Below are positions 40,963 through 62,582 of a stretch of DNA of 64,000 bases, in pieces; within the stretch, counting starts at the first letter, position 1; each line of letters starts with the position of its first letter. The stretch lies in sequence record NC_048821.1. One strand, 5' to 3'. The notes under the pieces were generated by a model. It did no database searches, had not been told where the DNA came from, and saw only the letters and a program-made list of their open reading frames with translations. The position numbers and the translations under genes were made by a program.

Positions 40963-43900
40963 ATGGGTGCCAAATTAGAATTTAAATTTAACGAACAAGA
41001 ACAAGTTTTAAAATACCTAAGCATAGAGAAAGAAACACTCCCTACGAAGCTAGTGGATGAACCTTCAGACGACGTACCGGAGCGTAACTGGGAGGAGTTA
41101 TTAAAAGCACACTGGGAAGAAGACTCTCTGAGTTCTTTAAAGACCGTCCGATTCATGAAGGACTTTGAAAGATATCGAGCTAGACCTGATTTAAAGACCA
41201 CCAATAAATCTTTCATCCGTACTATGGACGTATTCCGCCGCATGGGCATCAAGAACTGTGCTTTCCACTTACAACTTAACAACCCTATGTTGGTTGGAGT
41301 GGACCCTCGTTCCCCAGACTTAACAGATGATCAACGACTAATGATCATGAAAGAGATGCAAGAGAACTTCTGGTATTTCTTAAGGGAAGTGTGTCACTTA
41401 AACGGTGGTATCCGTTTCCGTGCTAACCGTGCTAACATTTCCTTTGCGTGGTGTTGGTTAAACCACCTGACTACAATGTTAATCCTCCCACGTCAGCAAG
41501 GTAAAGAATTATCTGTTGATGCTAAAATCAAAACTATGAATGGATGGGTTCGAAACGGAGACCTTAAACCAGGTGATGTGATACTGACGTCTAAGGGTGA
41601 TCCATGTAAAGTTAAGGGGGTTTATCCTCAAGGGGTTAAGTCTTTATATTGGGTTACTATGGAAGACGGTCGTCGGGTGAAGGCAGGTCTTGATCACTTG
41701 TGGAAAGTATTTGACTGGGGTAAGAATCGTTGGAAGATATGCAGTACTCGGGAATTGATCTCTGATTTATGTAAAGGACGTAAATGCAGTATTCCTATCG
41801 CACTCCCAGAACACAAGACTGATGTTAAGCTTCCTGTCCACCCTTGGCTACTGGGGATGATCTTAGGAGGAAATGGGATTACTGGTGCGCTAACCAAGAT
41901 TGGAAACAAAGATCCAATTGTGCGTCAAAAACTAGATCACATTCTAAGCCTCCACGAGAAACCTATAGTGACCGGAAAGGGGATCCCAGACGAATACCTT
42001 ACCTCATCTTATTTGCAGCGTGTGGAGCTTGTACAGGGCTTAATGGACGCTCATGGGGAAGTGACACCTACAGGTAATTTGTTATGGGTAAATGACGACG
42101 TGGAATTCAACGTGCGTTTGACTGAGCTCGTTCGATCGGTAGGTGGCGTAGTTTATACAAGCGAAGATGGAACCTGTTTAGAAATCAACGACCCTGCGTT
42201 AGACTTATTGGTTTCAGTAGATTATAAACGTAATCTGTTGAGACATAACTCTAAGGGTGTAGCGAGACCCACTCAGTTAGAGATTACTTCTATTGAGTAT
42301 GCTTGTGACGAAGAAGCGTTATGTATCGAGATAGATGACCCAGAACACCTGTACGTTACAGACGATTACATCGTAACCCACAACACGGTTACTGCACAAT
42401 GTATCTTTTTCTGGTTAACTTACATATCTGGTCGTGCTTACGAGTCTCACCTCATTACTCTGAAAGACGATAACCGACAACAATTCGTTGATGCGATTAA
42501 GGGTATCCGTAACAATATCCCGTCGTGGATGACGAACGTCACCTACCGAGATAAAGACGCAGGTAACTCGTTAACGTACTCTGCCTTTGGTGATGAGGTT
42601 AAGAACAAACTCACTATATCGGTACCACAGATCGGTCAGGAAGCAGCACGAAACGTTGGTCGTGGTTTAACCATCAAGTCTCGTTTCATAGATGAGCCTG
42701 CGTACATTAAGTGGATGGAAGAAATCCTCAACGGTGCTGGCCCATCTACGTTGACGGCTCGTGAAAACGCCCGCAGACTAAATGAACCTTACGCTACTGG
42801 GTTCATTACAACACCTGCGAGTATACTGACAGAATCTGGTCAGTATATGTACAACATCCTCATGGAGTCTACGGAATGGCGTGAAAACTATTTCGATACT
42901 TACGGGGAATCTCATCTGTACGATGTGCTGTTGAAGAACGCACCCAAAGCCACTACTAGTCCGTCAGTTGGCATGGTCTTCAACTACCTGCAACTTGGTA
43001 AGAACCGAGACTGGGTTAAGAAAACCATCGACGAACTTAAGTTGTCACTCAGTGAAGCTAAGATCGACTTGTTGTTGATGTGGGATGATAATGGTAAAGG
43101 TAAGTTATTCGATGACGAAACTCGTGATGCGTTGAATGATGCTAAACGTGGTCGTAGTTGGAGTCAACAGATCTCCGGTACATCTTTGTTCTTTGACTGG
43201 TTCATCACAGAAGAAGAACATGCCGAGATTATGAGTGGTGGAAAGAACTCCACTTTCTACTTAATTGGTTTGGATACTTCTGGTGCGGTAGGTCGAGACG
43301 CTTGCACTATCGTAGTGCGAGATATCAGAGACGGCTCTGTAGCGGGTGTAGGGCGTTATCAGCGTGCTTTCTTAACCGAGGTAGGGATGGTGGTCCAAAC
43401 ATTGCTCATGGAGCTTCCTAACTCGCTATTGATACCAGAACGTAACTACGCTCACCACATGATCGATCAATTGTTACAATCACTCCCTGCTATGGGACTG
43501 GATCCATTTAAGAAGATCTATAACCGCATCTTCCAAGATCCGATGAAATACCAAAACCATTACCGTGATATTAAAGCCCGCGCCTTTGGTAATCGCAACG
43601 ACGTGTTCTATTTGAAATACAAAGAGTTCTTTGGTTTCAACACTGGAGCGAAATCACGTGAGACCATGTACGGGTTCTTAGAAGAAGCGGTGAGCTTAAC
43701 CGGGTCTGGGACCAACTACACTAAATTGATTGACGAGTTAACTAACTTGAAGATTAAGAACGGACGCATTGACCACGAAACTGGTAACCACGATGATATC
43801 GTAATCAGTTGGTTATTAACATACTGGTTTATTAAGTTAGGGGAAAACAAAAATGAATACGGTATTCCTGCTGGCATTGCCTTAACTAACGTTAATATGT

Positions 43901-44175
43901 TACGCCTTGGTGAAACCAAGAAAGAACTCTCCGATCCAGTAAAACAAAAACGCATTGCTTTCTACCGACAAAAAATCGATGAAGTAAGTGCGAAGTTGAT
44001 GGACTGTGATGACCCTATCATAGTCGCACGCCTTGAAGTGGCTCTGGAGCGTTTGCGTGATATGGTTCCGGATGATGTCCGTAAGTCGATTACAATTGAT
44101 GATATTAAACGTCAAGCTGAAACCGAGCGTAATAAACGTATGTTGGAAAACAAGCGTAAAGGGTATCGTCGTTAG
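40963..44175 (+). CDS. terL: Terminase large subunit (phiKZ gp25-like), intein-containing
   Basis: Walker A PRQQGK/T, Walker B FIDEP, FITTP, nuclease IGLDTS and HDD motifs; 777 aa after intein removal. Confidence 0.93.
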   Translation: MGAKLEFKFNEQEQVLKYLSIEKETLPTKLVDEPSDDVPERNWEELLKAHWEEDSLSSLKTVRFMKDFERYRARPDLKTTNKSFIRTMDVFRRMGIKNCAFHLQLNNPMLVGVDPRSPDLTDDQRLMIMKEMQENFWYFLREVCHLNGGIRFRANRANISFAWCWLNHLTTMLILPRQQGKELSVDAKIKTMNGWVRNGDLKPGDVILTSKGDPCKVKGVYPQGVKSLYWVTMEDGRRVKAGLDHLWKVFDWGKNRWKICSTRELISDLCKGRKCSIPIALPEHKTDVKLPVHPWLLGMILGGNGITGALTKIGNKDPIVRQKLDHILSLHEKPIVTGKGIPDEYLTSSYLQRVELVQGLMDAHGEVTPTGNLLWVNDDVEFNVRLTELVRSVGGVVYTSEDGTCLEINDPALDLLVSVDYKRNLLRHNSKGVARPTQLEITSIEYACDEEALCIEIDDPEHLYVTDDYIVTHNTVTAQCIFFWLTYISGRAYESHLITLKDDNRQQFVDAIKGIRNNIPSWMTNVTYRDKDAGNSLTYSAFGDEVKNKLTISVPQIGQEAARNVGRGLTIKSRFIDEPAYIKWMEEILNGAGPSTLTARENARRLNEPYATGFITTPASILTESGQYMYNILMESTEWRENYFDTYGESHLYDVLLKNAPKATTSPSVGMVFNYLQLGKNRDWVKKTIDELKLSLSEAKIDLLLMWDDNGKGKLFDDETRDALNDAKRGRSWSQQISGTSLFFDWFITEEEHAEIMSGGKNSTFYLIGLDTSGAVGRDACTIVVRDIRDGSVAGVGRYQRAFLTEVGMVVQTLLMELPNSLLIPERNYAHHMIDQLLQSLPAMGLDPFKKIYNRIFQDPMKYQNHYRDIKARAFGNRNDVFYLKYKEFFGFNTGAKSRETMYGFLEEAVSLTGSGTNYTKLIDELTNLKIKNGRIDHETGNHDDIVISWLLTYWFIKLGENKNEYGIPAGIALTNVNMLRLGETKKELSDPVKQKRIAFYRQKIDEVSAKLMDCDDPIIVARLEVALERLRDMVPDDVRKSITIDDIKRQAETERNKRMLENKRKGYRR
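41506..42384 (+). mobile_element. Intein (293 aa, class-3 WCT signature, Glu1, degenerate LAGLIDADG endonuclease) in terL Walker A
   Basis: GK|ELSVDAKIKT...GLDHLW...ALCIEID..HLYVT..IVTHN|T; LAGLIDADG remnants WLLGMILGGNG and LVQGLMDAHG. Confidence 0.92.
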
Positions 44176-44187
44176 GTAAAATGCAAA

Positions 44188-44223
44188 TATAACTCCTACC
44201 TCCCTAGGGAGGTAGGAGTTATA
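44188..44223. terminator. Near-perfect palindromic, probably bidirectional terminator
   Basis: TATAACTCCTACCTCCC-ta-GGGAGGTAGGAGTTATA between convergent terL and tmk. Confidence 0.8.
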
Positions 44224-44359
44224 ACTTTTATCGTCTTGCCGGAGCTTAAGTTACCGCCAAATAACTTAACGCAAGACTACCTTACCAAAAAGAGGAGTTA
44301 TCATGTGTCCCACTTTCCAAACCTAGACCACACATAAAATGTAACACTTGGGTAAAAGT

Positions 44360-50198: not shown

Positions 50199-50337
50199 TT
50201 AAAAACTAAGTGACATGTATTATATGTTACAAAACCTTTTTACCCCATTTTTATTGAACGGTTACTTTGTACTCTAAAATCTTGTTATTTTACCTGTTTT
50301 TTCATCGTTATTTTCACCCCTAAAAGTGAAAGGCGAT

Positions 50338-50421
50338 GGGGAGAAAGAGGGGCAAGGTGATAGGGGCAAGGTGATAGGGGTGTCAAGGTTGAGTGGGTGT
50401 CAAGGTTAGTTGGTTCAAGTT
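50338..50421 (+). repeat. G-rich direct repeats (CAAGGT core x4 plus CAAGTT) with four GGGG runs
   Basis: GGGGCAAGGTGATA x2 (50349, 50363) and GGGTGTCAAGGTT x2; cores at 50353, 50367, 50384, 50401, 50416. Confidence 0.8.
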
Positions 50422-50651
50422 AGTTAAAAGATTCGGGCAAAGCCCAAGATAATTAATATTAATATATTAATATATCTAACTATAGAGTATGACTTCCTTA
50501 CAACGTAACGAGTATCACGAGTGAAGTGGTTAAGGTAAAGAGTCATACGTTAAAGGTATAGATACATAGTAGGATGTCCGTTAAGGAGTCCTACTAGGGT
50601 TTATACTGCTTTTTAAATATTTAAGTTAAGATTAATTAAGGTTATTAGACC

Positions 50652-51044
50652 ATGCAAGAAAAAGAAGTATTAGCGGGATTAGTAAGTAGAGCGTTGCATT
50701 TAGGAGTAGGGTTAGTACTAGAAGACGGAGATCATAAAGTACTGCTTAAGACTTACGAGATCCGTAATAAGTTAAAGCCACCGTATTATCGCTTAGAGGT
50801 TCACCTAGAGCGAATAGGAGAGCGTTATAGGTTACGTACCGTAGGGTTAGTTAAACTAGGGTATAGTGATATGACGTTAGACTATGGGTTAGGAGAACGA
50901 GTAGAGTTAAATACGTTCGGGGATTTAGATAAGGGCAGTTTAATTAGCTTTATAGGTAGCAGAGCACTAGACTTTATCGATTTACCCATTATCCACAATA
51001 ATGAATTAATCTTACATTACAACGTACCACCTATTAAGTTATAA
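50652..51044 (+). CDS. Hypothetical protein
   Basis: ORF of 130 aa; first gene after a 453-nt intergenic region. Confidence 0.6.
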   Translation: MQEKEVLAGLVSRALHLGVGLVLEDGDHKVLLKTYEIRNKLKPPYYRLEVHLERIGERYRLRTVGLVKLGYSDMTLDYGLGERVELNTFGDLDKGSLISFIGSRALDFIDLPIIHNNELILHYNVPPIKL

Positions 51045-55815: not shown

Positions 55816-56074
55816 AGTTATTTTTCTAACGGACAATATATTATATGTACTAAACTAAATCCGTCGAAGACCCCCTAGAAAGGATGGGAAAGGGTTATTT
55901 TTGCATACGAGTTATAGTAGTACTCCTTAGAGTGATCTATGAGGTACGAATAGTCACGGTGAGTGTTGTAGTACGAAGTACGTAAACACGATAAAAGGAG
56001 TGTACTACGTATAACGAGTAATGTGATGTACGAGTCCATGTAATAGGGAAATGATCTAGTAGAAAAGAATTTTG

Positions 56075-56093
56075 GTTCTATATTACTTTAGGG
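56075..56093 (+). promoter_or_regulatory. Putative early promoter GTTCTATATTACT-TT-AGGG
   Basis: Second copy of the 48206-48224 motif; upstream of 56153 and the AraC operon. Confidence 0.7.
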
Positions 56094-56152
56094 TAAATAA
56101 AACTGGATCATGTAAGTTATTAGTAAATAACGTTAGTAGGAGTAATTAGGAC

Positions 56153-57005: not shown

Positions 57006-58184
57006 ATGTCCATCGAGTTACCTATCGCTGAAGATCCAATCACAGCATTGACTTTTAAGAACATAGAAAAGTACTATAAGGAAAAGCGGAAGTTTACTGA
57101 TATCGCTAAAATTCAAAAGATTTGTCCCAACGCGATTACCAAACGTTTTGAAATCCAAGGGTTCGAAACCCCGGTGTACTACTTGAAAGAGTTACGTAAA
57201 GAGTTAGCTAAAACTTTAGTCACCGAAGGTGAGCTCTCATTGAGTGAGATAGCAAAAACCCTCGGTTACGATAAGACAATGAATTTCTACGTTTGGTACC
57301 AGTCTGTTTTTGGAGAACGTCCTACTAAAGTGCGAGCAAGAATGGGTCTTAAGTCTAAGACTCCGTGTCTAGGTGTGATCGACGCTATCGCTGAATCTAT
57401 TGCCTCAAAGATCGATCTCAACCCTAACCTTTACAAAAACGCCACTGAGCTCATGGAAGGTCACGAATATAGTGTCGTTTACATTAAGCGCACATTTATC
57501 AAAATGTACGGTAAGACACCTCGAGCTTATTTATTGGACCGACAACTAGAGTACGTTGCAGGCCAAATAAAGAATCACGGTTATAAGGAAAGTCGTTTAA
57601 TGGAAATGACCATGCATAACGCACCTACCGGACTCAATAAGGCTTTCAAAGCTAAGTACGGTATGACGACCAGTGATTACGGTGAATCTTTGTCGATCGG
57701 CACGTGGGCTAAAGTTCATGGTGAAAACGTGTGGGTGATGCCCTCACTTATGGATGAGATCTTGGACAACGTTACTGAGAACTTACTTGACGACCGCTTT
57801 AACCTTTACCAACTAAGAGACTTCTACGGCCTCAACTCACATTCTTGGGAACGAATGTTTAAGCTCTACACAGGCATGCTTCCAAGTAAGGCGCGTCAGT
57901 GTATTCGTTTAGAGTTAATCGTTTACTTCCTGCAAAACACCCGCTGGAAGTTCGCAAAGATCTTGAGAAAGGTTGGTTCTGATTATGAGTATGACGTCAG
58001 ACGACAAATGAAAGAATGTTACGGGTTGACTCCGGTTGAGATCCGTAAACTAAAAGGTCCACTTACCCGCTTTCATAATACGGAACAATTCGTTCGTTTT
58101 GTTAAATCCAACGCCGACCAATGTATCGAAGACGATAAGATTCGCTTAGAGAAAATCAAGGAAATTGAATTATGTACCCCGTAG
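57006..58184 (+). CDS. Protein of three tandem AraC/XylS DNA-binding domains, no effector domain
   Basis: Three HTH-HTH units, e.g. LSEIAKTLGYDKTMNFY..FG.RP, F.K.YG.TP..Y, F..YTG..P..R..RL. Confidence 0.85.
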   Translation: MSIELPIAEDPITALTFKNIEKYYKEKRKFTDIAKIQKICPNAITKRFEIQGFETPVYYLKELRKELAKTLVTEGELSLSEIAKTLGYDKTMNFYVWYQSVFGERPTKVRARMGLKSKTPCLGVIDAIAESIASKIDLNPNLYKNATELMEGHEYSVVYIKRTFIKMYGKTPRAYLLDRQLEYVAGQIKNHGYKESRLMEMTMHNAPTGLNKAFKAKYGMTTSDYGESLSIGTWAKVHGENVWVMPSLMDEILDNVTENLLDDRFNLYQLRDFYGLNSHSWERMFKLYTGMLPSKARQCIRLELIVYFLQNTRWKFAKILRKVGSDYEYDVRRQMKECYGLTPVEIRKLKGPLTRFHNTEQFVRFVKSNADQCIEDDKIRLEKIKEIELCTP

Positions 58185-58897
58185 ATAAAGAATCCAGAAC
58201 TCGTTTAATGGATGATTTGGACAAATGGATAAGTGAACACTACCTAGAAAAAGTCACCGTCAAAGACTTAAGTCATCAACTAGGCGTGTACATTCCAGAT
58301 GTCTACCGTTTGTTTGCCGAGCAACGTAATACTACTCCTGGTGAATACCTTCGACGCAAACGCTTAGTCAAAGCCAAGTCTTTATTGGAGTCAGGAGTCA
58401 GACCAACGTTAGCCGGAGCCCACGTTGGTTATTCTCACTTTCAATCTTTCATCAAAGAGTACAAAGCTTTCTTTAAACGCCATCCTCGTGAGGATTATGT
58501 GGATTCCCTCGAGGTCCCGACTATGGATTCTTATTCTAAAGAAACTATGGACCGATATTATCCTAGTGAGTTGCGTGAGAAGATATTGGATCATTTGATT
58601 AAAAACATCAAAGTTAATTTTAATTACGCTGATGTAGAAAAGAAGTTTGGTTTACCAGATCGTAGCTTAAGCGAAATGTTTGAACACTATTACGGTAAAC
58701 CCTATCGTGAATGGAGAAAGGATACTAGGATGAAATTAGCTAAGGACTTGCTCCACAAAAATCCAAGTATTAAGATTGCTGACTTGGCGACTACTGTAGG
58801 TTCTTGTAGTGCGACCTATTTACGGAAGCAATACCAAGAAGTCTACGGAGTTAATATCGTTGAACTCCGGGAAACTTTGAGAGGCGCGTGTGTCTGA
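58172..58897 (+). CDS. Protein of two tandem AraC/XylS DNA-binding domains
   Basis: VTVKDLS..LG...LF....TTPGEYLRRKRL..AKSLL..VGY...SF; second unit RM..AKDLL..I.DLA..VG. Confidence 0.88.
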   Translation: MYPVDKESRTRLMDDLDKWISEHYLEKVTVKDLSHQLGVYIPDVYRLFAEQRNTTPGEYLRRKRLVKAKSLLESGVRPTLAGAHVGYSHFQSFIKEYKAFFKRHPREDYVDSLEVPTMDSYSKETMDRYYPSELREKILDHLIKNIKVNFNYADVEKKFGLPDRSLSEMFEHYYGKPYREWRKDTRMKLAKDLLHKNPSIKIADLATTVGSCSATYLRKQYQEVYGVNIVELRETLRGACV

Positions 58898-59591
58898 TAA
58901 GAAATCCAGAGAGCTCAAGAAACTCAAAAATGCGGCTAAGAAATATTGTCTGGAGCCTAATGCCTCGGAATTAGTTTTAAAGAAAACGAGGATGACTCCC
59001 TCTAAAGTCATTAAAATATTCCGTGATACAGGGGAGGGGAGTTTGTATGATTACATTACCCATTTAAAAATGTTAGAGGCGAAGAAACTCTTAGATGACA
59101 CAGATCTTAACCTAACCTCTATTTCTAGAGCAATTGGGTATGCTAATCATAAATCGTTGAGAGAAAACTTCATCAAACAATTTGGTATGTATCCCTTGAA
59201 TTACCGCAACCGACCGAAGACCAACGACCTGGCTTGGGATTTGTTTAAAACTCATCCCAAGTTAACGGTACACCGTCAGACGTTTTTGCTAGATCATATC
59301 AAGAAACATTACAAAAGTTCTGATTTAAGCATCCAGACTCTATCGGACCGATTCCGTTTAACCCACCAAGAAATAGAACTGATTATCAAACACCATTATA
59401 GATTGGGATTGAAACAACTCTTATTAGACTTGCGTTTAAATCAAGCACATACCAAACTGCCTAATTACTATAAGCCATTGCGTCAACTCGCTGAGGAGTT
59501 AGGCTTCCTTGACTTTAGTTATTTCGTAGCGAAGTTCGAAGGGAAATATGGAATGGGACCTAAACGTTATCAACAACACGCACGTCTTTAA
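58890..59591 (+). CDS. Protein of two tandem AraC/XylS DNA-binding domains
   Basis: KM.EAKKLLDDTDL.LTSIS.AIGY...F.KQFG.YP..YR; LAEELGF.D.SYF..KF..KYG.GP..Y. Confidence 0.88.
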   Translation: MSDKKSRELKKLKNAAKKYCLEPNASELVLKKTRMTPSKVIKIFRDTGEGSLYDYITHLKMLEAKKLLDDTDLNLTSISRAIGYANHKSLRENFIKQFGMYPLNYRNRPKTNDLAWDLFKTHPKLTVHRQTFLLDHIKKHYKSSDLSIQTLSDRFRLTHQEIELIIKHHYRLGLKQLLLDLRLNQAHTKLPNYYKPLRQLAEELGFLDFSYFVAKFEGKYGMGPKRYQQHARL

Positions 59592-59620
59592 ATTAATCTT
59601 TAACTCAGTGTACATTGTAT

Positions 59621-60189
59621 GTGAGCGGTACAAGATTAGGTTTAGCTAGACTAGCGTGTCCGAAAAGAAAAGGTGTATACCGCGAGTCCGACCTAGGAAG
59701 TTATTCCTTCATTACAACCGCTCACAGCTTACTCATATCGTGTTACGAGTATAAAGCGCAGATCGCCACCCCCATGGCGATCACTATTTTCAGTCCAGAA
59801 TGACGACCTGTATCCCTTGTCATCGATGTTAGTTACTTGTTCTGGACTGAACCCTATTTGATCTAATGCCTCCAAATGGTTTTCTCCCTGTGTTACACAG
59901 CCATCACCATTAGGTCAAATAACTAAACGGAAGCCGAGCCTTCTGTTTGTTGGACCGAGTTGCCTTTAACTCCTCGGTCCCCAGCGGTAAACCCCTTGAC
60001 CGCTATAAAAAAAGGAGAGCGTTTTCTGCCAGCTCCAACGCTCCAATAAAGGGATGCTACGCCGAGGCTAGCCGGCTGGGTTTTCGACCGCAAAAGACAA
60101 ATGTCTTTGAGAATCCAGTTCGGGTACTTTCAGCGAGGTACTGTGAAACACTGCTTTGACCATCCCGAAGCCCGGGATGGTACTTTTTT
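59621..60189 (+). ncRNA. Candidate large structured ncRNA (~570 nt), family not recognised
   Basis: At least nine stems with G-U pairs favouring the plus strand, a TATG late-promoter-like start and a terminator at the end; no credible ORF. Confidence 0.6.
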
Positions 60190-60192
60190 GCA
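60159..60192 (+). terminator. Intrinsic terminator upstream of phuZ
   Basis: ACCATCCCG-aagcc-CGGGATGGT followed by ACTTTTTTGCA. Confidence 0.85.
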
Positions 60193-60229
60193 TTTTAAAT
60201 ATTTTAGCTAAACTTTAAAGGAGTTTATT

Positions 60230-61195
60230 ATGTCTACATTACGTGCATGGTGTGTTGGTGGTGCGGGTATCAACATTGGTTCGGCATGGAACAAATCACT
60301 AAGAAATCTACCTTTAGCAAAAGTGGATTTCATTGGTCTAGATACGTCCATGAATAACCGTCCGGATGATGACGCCTTCACTGTCGAATCACCAGCAAAC
60401 ACCCGAGGTGGTGGTAAGAAGCGTACACTTAATCGTGACCTTATCCCAGACTTCGTAAAACAGATGCTTATCAAACACCGTCCAGGTGACTTCAACGTAG
60501 TCATCTACAGTGGTGCAGGTGCGTCAGGTTCTACGATTGGTCCTTACTTGGTTCGTGCGCTTATGGAAGCCGGTGTTCCAGTGGTTTCTTTCTTAGTTTT
60601 GGATCAAACTACAGACATCGAGTTTGAAAACACACTCGCAACCCTTCGCTCTCTGGATGGTCAACGTAAGTATTTCAACCAACCAGTCGTTCTAGATGTA
60701 TTAGAGAACAATGAGCGAATGAATCGTGGTCAGATGAACGAACTCGCGGTAGAGCGATTAAACCTACTCAGCTTGTTCTTAACCGATGTTCATGAGGAAT
60801 CCGACTACGAAGATGTTCGTCACTTACTGAACTACTCTAGTGCGATCGATATTCCACCTGCACTAACTCGTATTGAGTACTATGATGGTCAAACCATCGA
60901 CCAACGTCAAGGTGTTGCAGTAGCGAGTTTCTCTCTTTACTCTCACCGTAACGATATCCGTTCTGTACAGATTGGTAAGAGTTACCGTGTGACAGGTGTT
61001 ATGCACCCAGACACAATCACCCCTAACAAAACAGGTGAGTTACACATGATGTTAGAGTACGATAGTGTGACCGACCAACTTATCGAAGACCTACAGCGTT
61101 CTGAGCAACAAGCAGCAGAGCGTCAAGCACAGTTTCACAAGACCCGTGCTAAAGACCTCACAGAAGACGCTGATGGCGATTCAATGTGCTGGTAA
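60230..61195 (+). CDS. phuZ: PhuZ phage tubulin
   Basis: GGAGINIG (T1), IDTS-like LDTS, GGGKKR, SGAGASGS (T4 variant), acidic C-tail ending DGDSMCW; 321 aa. Confidence 0.92.
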   Translation: MSTLRAWCVGGAGINIGSAWNKSLRNLPLAKVDFIGLDTSMNNRPDDDAFTVESPANTRGGGKKRTLNRDLIPDFVKQMLIKHRPGDFNVVIYSGAGASGSTIGPYLVRALMEAGVPVVSFLVLDQTTDIEFENTLATLRSLDGQRKYFNQPVVLDVLENNERMNRGQMNELAVERLNLLSLFLTDVHEESDYEDVRHLLNYSSAIDIPPALTRIEYYDGQTIDQRQGVAVASFSLYSHRNDIRSVQIGKSYRVTGVMHPDTITPNKTGELHMMLEYDSVTDQLIEDLQRSEQQAAERQAQFHKTRAKDLTEDADGDSMCW

Positions 61196-61591: not shown

Positions 61592-62080
61592 ATGTACGTT
61601 ATCAACACGGGTCAGATTATGCGAGATCTACTCACGTTCGATAAGTTAGATTTTGATGAATTCTTAATCCATGGTTATGTTCATGCCCTGGTGGAAGACG
61701 TGATTCGAGTTTTTAACTCTAAAGACTTCGACCAAGCTTACGATCGCATCGGACACCTAACTACATTGTTAGGTAATAACCCGGCGGTGGAAACCATTTA
61801 TATGGACCAGCTTGAAAATCTACGCAAGTATGTTCGTCAGGCTGGATGGGACCCACGTGTCCATATTAAGATTTGTGAAGATAAAAGCATAAAAGATCGA
61901 AGTGGGATTATTCAACAGATCTTACTTATCATGGACCTGGATGCCACATTCGAATCAATGTTAGTCGAAACAGATTCAACTACTTCTTTAGGAGAACTTG
62001 TCAGTGATAACCCTAGCCAGGACGATCTCGCAAAAGTTATCGAAGATGAAATTGCTAGCTCTGAGTCTGGAGCAAGTTAA
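61592..62080 (+). CDS. Hypothetical protein (phiKZ-like core-block position)
   Basis: RBS AAGGGG; acidic 162-aa ORF. Confidence 0.65.
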   Translation: MYVINTGQIMRDLLTFDKLDFDEFLIHGYVHALVEDVIRVFNSKDFDQAYDRIGHLTTLLGNNPAVETIYMDQLENLRKYVRQAGWDPRVHIKICEDKSIKDRSGIIQQILLIMDLDATFESMLVETDSTTSLGELVSDNPSQDDLAKVIEDEIASSESGAS

Positions 62081-62582
62081 AGCTTTAACCTGGGAGTTGA
62101 TGTACGAGAATGACCTCAGACCCATACCTTTAGAGAAAACTGCTGATGTTCACGCAGGTTTGTTGTACATGGGGATTAAGCTGGTGTGTGACCACCCAAA
62201 GTTCAAACTGGGCCCCGCTCCCTCCGAACCAATTAAATACGAACCCTTGTATTTTTACGACAAAGCGGCTGAACGAGAAGACTTTGAAATAGTAACACTG
62301 TATCCGGAATACGACATCTCTTTTTTGAATCGTTATTATTCCGCCAGAGTGTTAGATGAAATTACATCGGAAATACAATTCGGTGTCTTACAACTGTTGT
62401 ACAGCGTGACCCCGAATACTTATTTTGACCATATCGTTACAGTAACTGTACCGAATACTGAATTTATGGTCATCACTGTACACGAAGACGACTTAGAGGA
62501 AAGCGATGCTGACGATATATCAGATGCAACCGATGGCGGACTTCATTCAGAGACGATGTTTGACGGATTTCACCACAGTTAG
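61998..62582 (+). CDS. Hypothetical protein (start uncertain, possibly 62046)
   Basis: ORF in a tight gene array. Confidence 0.55.
   Translation: MSVITLARTISQKLSKMKLLALSLEQVKALTWELMYENDLRPIPLEKTADVHAGLLYMGIKLVCDHPKFKLGPAPSEPIKYEPLYFYDKAAEREDFEIVTLYPEYDISFLNRYYSARVLDEITSEIQFGVLQLLYSVTPNTYFDHIVTVTVPNTEFMVITVHEDDLEESDADDISDATDGGLHSETMFDGFHHS

Follow-up and report, generated by a model that had tools for sequence, protein, structure and literature searches.

A putative family of large, multi-domain non-coding RNAs encoded upstream of phuZ in Aphroditevirus-like jumbo phages

Structured non-coding RNAs (ncRNAs) longer than about 400 nucleotides (nt) are rare in bacteria and phages, and GOLLD and ROOL represent the large, ornate RNAs of phages and Firmicutes. 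To our knowledge, nearly all studied structured ncRNAs of this size proved to be ribozymes, cores of ribonucleoprotein particles (RNPs) or self-assembling particles. We know of no large structured ncRNA described in nucleus-forming (chimallivirus-type) jumbo phages, in which RNA must cross a protein shell, and the ncRNAs that we know from these viruses are short. The small RNAs (sRNAs) of phages phiKZ and 201phi2-1 mapped by ONT-cappable-seq are, by the filter applied, shorter than 250 nt and originate mostly from 5' untranslated regions (UTRs) (PMC11512511, PMC10914365), and the only ncRNAs mentioned in a recent jumbo-phage review are unspecified ones of phiKZ. Here, we analyzed a 638-nt gene-free gap (positions 59592-60229, plus strand) within a 64,000-nt stretch of the sequence record NC_048821.1 (hereafter, the window), which constitutes the right end of the genome of Photobacterium phage PDCC-1, a phiKZ-like jumbo phage (Aphroditevirus, Gorgonvirinae). 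The gap, flanked by the third of three AraC-like genes (58890-59591) on the left and by the phage tubulin gene phuZ (60230-61195) on the right, corresponds to positions 233101-233738 of MN562221 (100% identity), where it is unannotated. Its folding z-score, covariation and strand-specific folding energies bear out the preliminary description of this locus, which had proposed a structured RNA there: the gap contains a conserved, plus-strand, multi-domain RNA unit that is explained neither by coding nor by chance. We consider it probable, with moderate confidence, that this unit is a discrete plus-strand ncRNA founding a new family.

The predicted RNA shares with GOLLD and ROOL a length of several hundred nt, multi-domain organization, phage origin, its own terminator and the combination of conserved loops with variable peripheral hairpins. 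However, the covariance models of these two families do not match the PDCC-1 RNA even at E ≤ 10, its gene is not located beside tRNA genes, its carriers are jumbo phages of Vibrionaceae, and it was found in only six lineages. The resemblance to the sRNAs of phiKZ and 201phi2-1 lies in the fact that these are also ncRNAs of nucleus-forming jumbo phages, in which a phage promoter is followed by a close terminator, and that some of them are conserved in position (PMC11512511, PMC10914365); on the other hand, none of them was reported upstream of phuZ, and the PDCC-1 RNA is 2-3 times larger and junction-rich.

The screening of the whole window with Rfam 15 gave no hit at the gathering threshold for any family, including GOLLD, ROOL, OLE, HEARO, raiA, RNase P, 6S, tmRNA, group I and II introns, T-box, riboswitches and self-cleaving ribozymes. 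Within positions 59000-60800 only four chance-level hits (E = 4-8), far below the threshold, were obtained, and the RNAs of the five other lineages gave nothing at E ≤ 1; the absence of a covariance-model match in every lineage agrees with the earlier assignment of the RNA to no known class. ARAGORN indicated no tRNA or tmRNA gene in the window. Several likenesses, i.e., to the 5' end of tmRNA or CAGCUCCA, to P4 of RNase P, to the T-box sequence, to the cobalamin B12 box, to domain V of group II introns or the U6 AGC triad with its bulged U, to the CsrA site RUACARGGAUGU and to an antisense of the 16S 530 loop, were considered and rejected, as they were supported neither by the scans nor by conservation. 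With regard to a sponge of the CsrB/RsmZ type, only one conserved unpaired run containing GGA (AAGGGA) was found, and the other GGA motifs are not conserved. Judging from these comparisons, the RNA is a new family within the loose kind of large ornate phage RNAs of unknown function, with no detectable relation to GOLLD, ROOL or the sRNAs of phiKZ and 201phi2-1.

The gap is non-coding and unusually structured, as indicated by its folding z-scores, its short unmatched open reading frames (ORFs) and the shifting of these frames in relatives. The ORFs found within it do not exceed 70 amino acids, start mostly with TTG and match no Pfam or PHROG family, and in related phages they change both frame and strand, even at 95% DNA identity; this is consistent with the earlier statement that the gap holds no credible ORF. 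An unannotated small protein gene is very improbable here, since no ORF is conserved in frame among the homologues of the spacer. The minimum free energy (MFE) of the plus strand is -203 kcal/mol, compared with -158 ± 5.7 kcal/mol in dinucleotide shuffles (z = -7.9), and the z-score for the minus strand is -3.8. All stems and both putative pseudoknot strands named in the preliminary description were found at their positions, and they are included in the following list of features, all on the plus strand of PDCC-1:

59598-59621, plus strand: promoter-like motif CTTTAACTCAGTGTACATTGTATG, with TATG at 59618-59621 and G59621 as the predicted +1.
59621-60189, plus strand: predicted transcript, a structured RNA of about 569 nt, proposed from the MFE z-score, the 126-pair consensus, the plus-strand preference and the lack of an Rfam family.
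59620-59726, plus strand: 5' domain, in which helix P1 (59620-29 with 59717-26) closes a multibranch holding P2 and P3.
59658-59684, plus strand: invariant core of the 5' domain, GUCCGAA (59658-64) and GGUGUAUACCGCG (59672-84).
59733-59782, plus strand: variable module of two peripheral hairpins, at about 59733-59757 and at 59761-59782 (the latter a listed stem).
59789-59851, plus strand: long hairpin with a 12-bp stem (59789-800/59840-51) and a loop containing GUAUCCCUU (59810-18).
59810-59818 and 60049-60057, plus strand: putative pseudoknot strands GTATCCCTT and AAGGGATGC.
59852-59855, plus strand: CCCU strand of the helix closing the four-hairpin junction, its partner being AGGG at 60050-60053 (RNAalifold helix 8).
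59855-59921, plus strand: variable module, a peripheral hairpin with a 14-bp stem (59855-68/59908-21; inverted repeat I1).
59925-60043, plus strand: four-hairpin junction domain, with HP1 at 59925-48 (stem 59925-33/59940-48), HP2 at 59952-80 (stem 59952-59/59973-80), HP3 at 59983-60004 (stem 59983-88/59999-60004) and HP4 at 60017-43 (stem GAGCGTT 60017-23/AACGCTC 60037-43).
60049-60057, plus strand: AAGGGAUGC, with the near-invariant purine run AAGGGA at the junction, kept in lineages 1-5.
60055-60140, plus strand: domain III, a long irregular hairpin with an apical helix formed by CTGGGTTTTC (60076-85) and GAGAATCCAG (60109-18).
60159-60189, plus strand: intrinsic terminator, ACCAUCCCG-loop-CGGGAUGGU followed by AC and U6 (hairpin 60159-81, T6 at 60184-89, terminator scan).
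60190-60229, plus strand: AT-rich segment GCATTTTAAATATTTTAGCTAAAC and the Shine-Dalgarno (SD) sequence AAGGAG (60218-23), nearly invariant in all lineages.

Blastn searches revealed the spacer, in a single copy each, in five distinct isolate genomes (10 database records), i.e., PDCC-1 and the Vibrio phages 2 TSL-2019, USC-1 (identical to 5 TSL-2019), Aphrodite1 and phiKT1019, always in the order AraC-like array, spacer, phuZ. With PhuZ used as a guide, three further uncultured lineages were recovered from Logan and ENA assemblies, the first comprising L033, the second L038, L068, L071 and L072, and the third L034, L037, L069 and L070. Isolates and uncultured contigs together represent six lineages carrying the RNA. 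The PhuZ proteins of the uncultured lineages are 61-65% identical to that of PDCC-1, and the contigs which reach far enough show the same order of three AraC-like genes, a spacer of 493-760 nt and phuZ. These three Aphroditevirus-like lineages have no counterpart among the deposited phage genomes, and one of them is represented by a 244-kb scaffold.

Blastn searches of phage genomes with the L033 and L069 RNAs gave no match, and, apart from the isolates, PhuZ-guided scans of IMG/VR and JGI metagenomes yielded a single Miami-like contig. The covariance model R1, built for the 3' half of the RNA and applied with filters on and off, detected nothing in the next-nearest chimalliviruses (Miami, RisingSun, L032, L064 and L066), whose PhuZ proteins are 34-43% identical. 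Several other candidates were discarded: a domain III 15-mer matched 18 loci in IMG/VR, of which those in the four isolate genomes alone were upheld by nhmmer; a degenerate pattern for domain III indicated three extra IMG/VR contigs, in which the helix fails to form; the pattern of the 5' core occurs in GTDB genomes at a chance rate (24 hits versus about 35 expected), with no Rfam family beneath; and an 11-nt identity in L064 (GCCGGCUGGGU) is not accompanied by the homologous helix. Because neither the R1 model nor the pattern scans of IMG/VR and GTDB found anything outside this clade, the family appears, as far as can be seen, to be confined to Aphroditevirus-like, phiKZ-type jumbo phages of Vibrio and Photobacterium.

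Analysis of the five isolates with RNAalifold (alignment A1) gave a consensus of 126 pairs, in which 94.7% of cells are paired and 21 pairs show compensatory double changes, while controls with the partners slid by 1-3 columns gave 34-46% paired cells and 2-6 compensatory pairs. For the 3' half, ten sequences representing all six lineages were realigned with the R1 model (alignment A5), and 54 pairs were obtained (88% paired, 20 compensatory), compared with 1-12 compensatory pairs in the slid controls. In both alignments none of the 500 shuffles reached the observed values, although this control ignores phylogeny and overstates significance for related sequences. The homologues thus contain compensatory pairs above the controls (21/126 in the isolates and 20/54 in the 3' half), as expected for a conserved structured RNA. 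The consensus folding energy is lower for the plus strand, both in the 3' half (-34.8 versus -14.8, alignment A4) and over the full length (-132 versus -114, A1), and the helices comprise 63 G-U versus 17 A-C cells, a count biased by the derivation of the structure on the plus strand; both results agree with the earlier remark that the G-U pairs favour this strand. Judged by these substitutions, the fold is shown to be under purifying selection in six lineages.

These data bear also on the idea that the conserved entity is DNA, i.e., a replication origin, a centromere of the PhuZ spindle (tubC-like) or a set of protein-binding palindromes. The gap adjoins a tubulin gene, and in TubZ systems the centromere is located upstream of the operon; tubC of TubZRC is likewise a non-coding element directly 5' of a tubulin-family gene, and compensatory changes preserve palindromes in DNA as well as helices in RNA. 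However, tubC consists of arrayed DNA iterons to which TubR binds, whereas the gap contains no iterons or direct-repeat arrays (only three two-copy direct repeats of 9-12 nt were found) and its conservation is strand-specific and of the RNA type. The strand asymmetry given above for the 3' half, together with a nested P1 spanning about 100 nt and the placing of the junction, promoter and terminator on a single strand, makes a DNA-level element very unlikely.

The same plan was recognized in all lineages: a 5' domain, a variable region, the four-hairpin junction, domain III and the intrinsic terminator. The predicted length ranges from about 430 nt in the minimal versions, through about 570 nt in PDCC-1, to about 690 nt in L069. 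Five different helix sequences make up P1 (GUGAGCGGU, GUAAGCGAUGC, GUAGGGA.AG, GUGAGCAAGUGA and GUAAACAAAACUAA), and in each of the six lineages the helix begins precisely at the G of TATG, in agreement with the earlier observation that this G lies at the base of the first stem. The core formed by GUCCGAA and GGUGUAUACCGCG is identical, with one R position, in lineages 1-5 and has diverged in the L069 lineage.

Large structured RNAs commonly lose or gain whole hairpins as modules, and this is also observed here. The variable region contains one to four hairpins, depending on the lineage. Its 59733-59782 module is present in PDCC-1, 2 TSL-2019 and phiKT1019, with two compensatory pairs in the 59761-82 hairpin, and is deleted as a whole in USC-1 and Aphrodite1, which also lack the 59855-59921 hairpin; L069 carries extra hairpin modules. 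Consequently, the extent of about 570 nt proposed earlier fits the predicted PDCC-1 unit (about 569 nt) but not the whole family, since about 140 nt (59733-59782 and 59855-59921) are missing in USC-1 and Aphrodite1, and the conserved core comprises about 430 nt. The long hairpin (helix 7) has 5 compensatory pairs out of 13, and the invariant CCCU/AGGG helix carries no covariation.

In the junction domain, helices 1-4, corresponding to HP1-HP4, show 4, 5, 1 and 3 compensatory pairs, respectively (model R1, alignment A5), and all four hairpins were found in L033 and L038. The loops of HP2, HP3 and HP4 in PDCC-1 are GCCUUUAAC, ACCCCUUGA and CAGCUCC, and across lineages the conserved forms are GCCUUUAAC, ACCCCU.GA and CAGCUCC, followed by the near-invariant AAGGGA. 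Domain III (helix 5) comprises 23 pairs (92.5% paired, 7 compensatory) and has an invariant core, CCGGCUG (60072-78) with CAG-U-UCGG (60116-23), containing a bulged U and a purine-purine mismatch. The helix above this core covaries freely (GGGUU/GAAUCC, GAGCU/AGCUC, GAACUUUC/GAGAGUUC and GGAUUCU/AGAGUCC), and domain III is the sole part of the L034/L069 lineage recognized by the R1 model (E = 2e-4). We also considered whether UCCGAA of the 5' domain pairs at long range with UUCGG of domain III, but a change in L033 is compensated locally and not distally, which speaks for the local helix.

At the base of domain III, the stem AGCCGG/UCGGGU with its bulge loosely resembles the group II domain V; this likeness is unsupported by the scans. 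Introns and homing endonucleases do occur in jumbo phages (PMC13282480), and the unit could in principle be a decaying relic of an intron or mobile element (a group I or group II intron, a guide RNA associated with an insertion sequence, or a retron). Nevertheless, no Rfam intron, ribozyme or guide-RNA hit was obtained in any lineage at permissive thresholds, the locus lies between genes and does not split a host gene, and no reverse transcriptase, TnpB or endonuclease gene is located nearby. Moreover, compensatory change upholds the structure across lineages with PhuZ proteins 61-100% identical, which is the opposite of decay. A relic of this kind therefore has hardly any probability, and we regard all three of these explanations (DNA-level element, mobile-element relic and hidden gene) as unlikely; the intron remnant or mobile-element end named in the preliminary description as a possible identity has no match in the Rfam scans of the window and of the relatives' RNAs.

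That description had further proposed a 9-bp pseudoknot between the loop of the long hairpin and the purine run at the junction. The complementarity of 59810-18 and 60049-57 is real and kept in relatives, with 7 bp in 2 TSL-2019, 9 bp in phiKT1019 and 6 bp in USC-1 and Aphrodite1, in which a flanking pair switches between C-G and U-A; in the L038 lineage, CUAUUCC of the variable region pairs with GGGAUAG (7 bp) through a G-C to C-G swap. However, this pairing is not unique, L033 and L069 have no partner for it, and at least three other pyrimidine runs can pair equally well with AAGGGA. One of these, UAUUCCUU in the 5' domain, could form 8-9 bp in each of four lineages, and L033 shows two compensatory changes in it; another, the CCCU strand of the junction, is the choice of RNAalifold; and the third is the HP3 loop, in which CCCUU is replaced in phiKT1019 by CCCCU together with AAGGG by AGGGG. 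With G-U pairs allowed, the G-rich 10-mer has many partners, and 12 helices of 7 bp or more were counted in phiKT1019 alone. We regard the pseudoknot as plausible but not established.

As regards the boundaries of the unit, ATT-N-TATGT is invariant in nine sequences of the six lineages, while the flanks diverge, and the ATTNTATG motif is conserved in all lineages. In the 64-kb window, all four copies of ATTNTATG are intergenic (intergenic DNA makes up 5.8% of the window), compared with 0.2 expected. The three plus-strand copies each follow a stop codon by 20-25 nt and open a long gap devoid of genes, and they have a common upstream context, CTAAC..G.ACA. The late promoters of the phiKZ non-virion RNA polymerase are TATG, with G as +1 (PMC4666361). 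By analogy, transcription of the PDCC-1 RNA by a phage RNA polymerase would start at G59621 and its expression may be late, although a -20 element leaves middle timing possible.

At the other end, the earlier prediction of a terminator closing the unit at 60189 was corroborated: the scan located an intrinsic (rho-independent) terminator with a 9-bp stem, six G-C pairs and T6. Its stem covaries across lineages (CCAUCCUAC/GUAGGAUGG, CCACUCCCC/GGGGAGUGG, CCACCUCC/GGAGGUGG, and AUCCC/GGGAU, AUCCUAC/GUAGGAU, CUCCCC/GGGGAG and CACCUCC/GGAGGUG), and its U-tract does not vary. Most simply, the locus is read as a self-contained unit consisting of promoter, RNA and terminator.

Several side observations concern the other copies of the promoter-like motif and further repeats. 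The fourth copy of ATTNTATG is located on the minus strand (44333-44340), in the convergent gap 44176-44359, and points toward the plus-strand gene 40963-44175, into its end, possibly indicating a small antisense or non-coding transcript. The gene-free gap 50199-50651 (453 nt, fold z = -7.2) opens with the promoter-like ATTATATGT at 50219, contains tandem G-rich repeats (GGGGCAAGGTGATA and GGGTGTCAAGGTT, two copies each, at about 50340-50410) and a run of AT palindromes (at about 50450-50475), and closes with a hairpin and TTTTTAAATATTTAAG ahead of the gene at 50652. This region could be another ncRNA or an origin-like region. The gap 55816-56152 (337 nt, MFE z only -2.5) likewise starts with ATTATATGT (55840), after which there are a small hairpin and TTATTTTTGCAT, and it is conserved in the distant L033 (722-1052) and L068 (661-968), e.g., in GAGTTATAG..GTACTCCTTAGAGTGA.CTATGAGGTACGAATAG; it may correspond to a short TATG-led RNA and a conserved leader. 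The 9-mer CTTTAACTC is found twice, in the promoter-like -20 region (59598-59606) and in the HP2 loop (59964-59972). A near-palindrome, TTTAGCTA(G/A)AC, is present both in the 5' domain (59640-59653) and in the phuZ-proximal segment (60200-60213), and is not kept by relatives.

The genes flanking the gap are as follows:

57006-59591, plus strand: three tandem AraC-like genes with 3, 2 and 2 HTH_18 domains (Pfam), upstream neighbours in every lineage.
60230-61195, plus strand: phuZ (phage tubulin), downstream neighbour in every lineage.

The three AraC-like genes overlap and encode solely AraC-type HTH_18 domains (seven in all), with no sensor domain. The array is found in all six RNA-bearing lineages, 5' of the RNA also in L033, L068, L069, L071 and L072, and it is not located upstream of phuZ in Miami, RisingSun, ZPAH34 and FishSpeaker. 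On the other side of phuZ, the plus-strand ORFs 61592-62080 and 61998-62582 overlap by 83 nt in different frames, and an overlap of this type is also present in the gene calls of related contigs.

This arrangement allows for the possibility that the RNA is a structured 3' UTR of the AraC-like operon mRNA, i.e., a stabilizing or processing module with no promoter and no independent function of its own. The terminator scan shows no terminator between 59591 and the RNA, so transcripts of the AraC-like operon would also run through and end in it; in addition, the RNA is accompanied by the array in each lineage, and neither of them is found in Miami, RisingSun, ZPAH34 or FishSpeaker. On the other hand, the conserved, intergenic-specific ATTNTATG is located exactly at the base of P1, and a stabilizer needs only a terminal hairpin, not a conserved multi-domain fold of 430 nt with invariant loops. 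We therefore consider this explanation quite improbable.

The segment between the terminator and phuZ, part of which (TTTAAATATTT) recurs before the gene at 50652, is probably, to judge from its near invariance, the own promoter and leader of phuZ and not part of the RNA. It is relevant to another explanation, according to which the RNA is a cis-acting leader or attenuator of phuZ: transcripts from TATG or from the AraC-like operon would stop at the terminator or read into phuZ, and the fold, perhaps with a bound factor, would set the ratio of read-through or mask the ribosome-binding site of phuZ. In all six lineages the RNA is located directly upstream of phuZ, with the spacing fixed at about 40 nt; AAGGGAUG (60050-57) is identical to part of the 3' arm of the terminator and could act as an antiterminator by pairing with CAUCCC in the 5' arm; and CCUUUAA of the HP2 loop is complementary to UUAAAGG overlapping the SD of phuZ. 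RisingSun, Miami and L064 also have long, non-homologous, structured non-coding stretches before phuZ (z = -2.9 to -5.1). Attenuation leaders such as riboswitches and T-boxes likewise combine a structured RNA with an intrinsic terminator placed just before the ribosome-binding site of a gene.

However, known attenuators are far smaller than an RNA of 430-690 nt with more than ten helices, no riboswitch or T-box model matched, and a separate conserved, promoter-like segment lies between the terminator and phuZ. The putative antiterminator also weakens among the relatives: the GGGAUG/CAUCCC pairing comprises 6 bp in lineages 1 and 3 and falls to 3-5 bp without covariation in the others, among them phiKT1019, L033 and L069. 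In 570 nt, a 7-mer complementary to some part of a 20-nt target would arise by chance in about one case out of two, and neither the antiterminator nor the anti-SD pairing covaries or exceeds chance. GGUGUAUACCGCG resembles the T-box sequence GGUGGUACCGCG, but it lies in the 5' domain, 500 nt from the terminator, and the likeness is not borne out by the Rfam scan or by conservation. We regard a cis-acting leader as unlikely, and we assign the same low probability to the read-through and masking mechanism proposed for it.

The stretches before phuZ in the three other phages are located at L029:2675-4000 (RisingSun, z = -2.9), L028:1000-4000 (Miami, z = -5.1) and L064:3646-4580 and 1912-2788 (z = -3.3). 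They are moderately structured and contain tiny or no annotated ORFs, and the covariance model finds no homology in them; the phuZ neighbourhood may be a general site for non-coding elements.

Returning to the discrete ncRNA, its synthesis and action can be proposed as follows. A phage RNA polymerase would start at G59621, the 5' end would form helix P1, and transcription would stop at the U-tract 60184-60189, releasing an RNA of about 570 nt, while phuZ would be served by its own AT-rich promoter in the next 40 nt. The RNA would then act in trans as a folded scaffold, i.e., as an RNP component or possibly a ribozyme, and not as a base-pairing regulator; its invariant single-stranded loops and the CCGGCUG/CAG-U-UCGG core would serve a partner from the phage or the host as binding or active sites. 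The role of a folded object is favoured because of the size of the RNA, its junction-rich modularity, its invariant loops and the invariant non-canonical helix core. Such a trans-acting mechanism (scaffold, RNP core or ribozyme) is nonetheless a guess, in which we have less confidence than in the discreteness of the RNA.

Several points weigh against this interpretation. Both ends of the RNA, and its discreteness, are predicted from sequence features, and, with no terminator ahead of it, transcripts of the AraC-like operon would also run through it. The inner helices of the 5' domain are only partly resolved in the consensus model, and any tertiary contacts are tentative. The number of lineages is six, of which two or three are very close pairs, and given this and a shuffle control which ignores phylogeny, the covariation constitutes strong evidence but not formal proof. 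The idea of a trans-acting scaffold is a guess drawn only from size, modularity and invariant loops, and the strict linkage to phuZ fits a cis role equally. Likewise, the partnership with the AraC-like array or the regulation of phuZ suggested in the preliminary description has strict synteny within one clade as its sole evidence.

As a tentative possibility, the RNA may represent a hitherto unrecognized class of large ornate RNAs of nucleus-forming jumbo phages (430-690 nt) acting in trans as an RNP core, ribozyme or self-assembling particle, in which case the invariant CCGGCUG/CAG-U-UCGG helix and the conserved loops would be its functional sites. A link of this RNA with the clade-specific AraC-like array or with the PhuZ-dependent organization of the infected cell may exist. 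The RNA is small enough for probing, its essential core is already outlined by natural variants of minimal (about 430 nt) and expanded (about 690 nt) length, and cultured pairs of host and phage are available (Vibrio alginolyticus with Aphrodite1 or USC-1, and Photobacterium damselae with PDCC-1). Its fixed place between a clade-specific AraC-type array and a tubulin gene gives rise to concrete, testable hypotheses.

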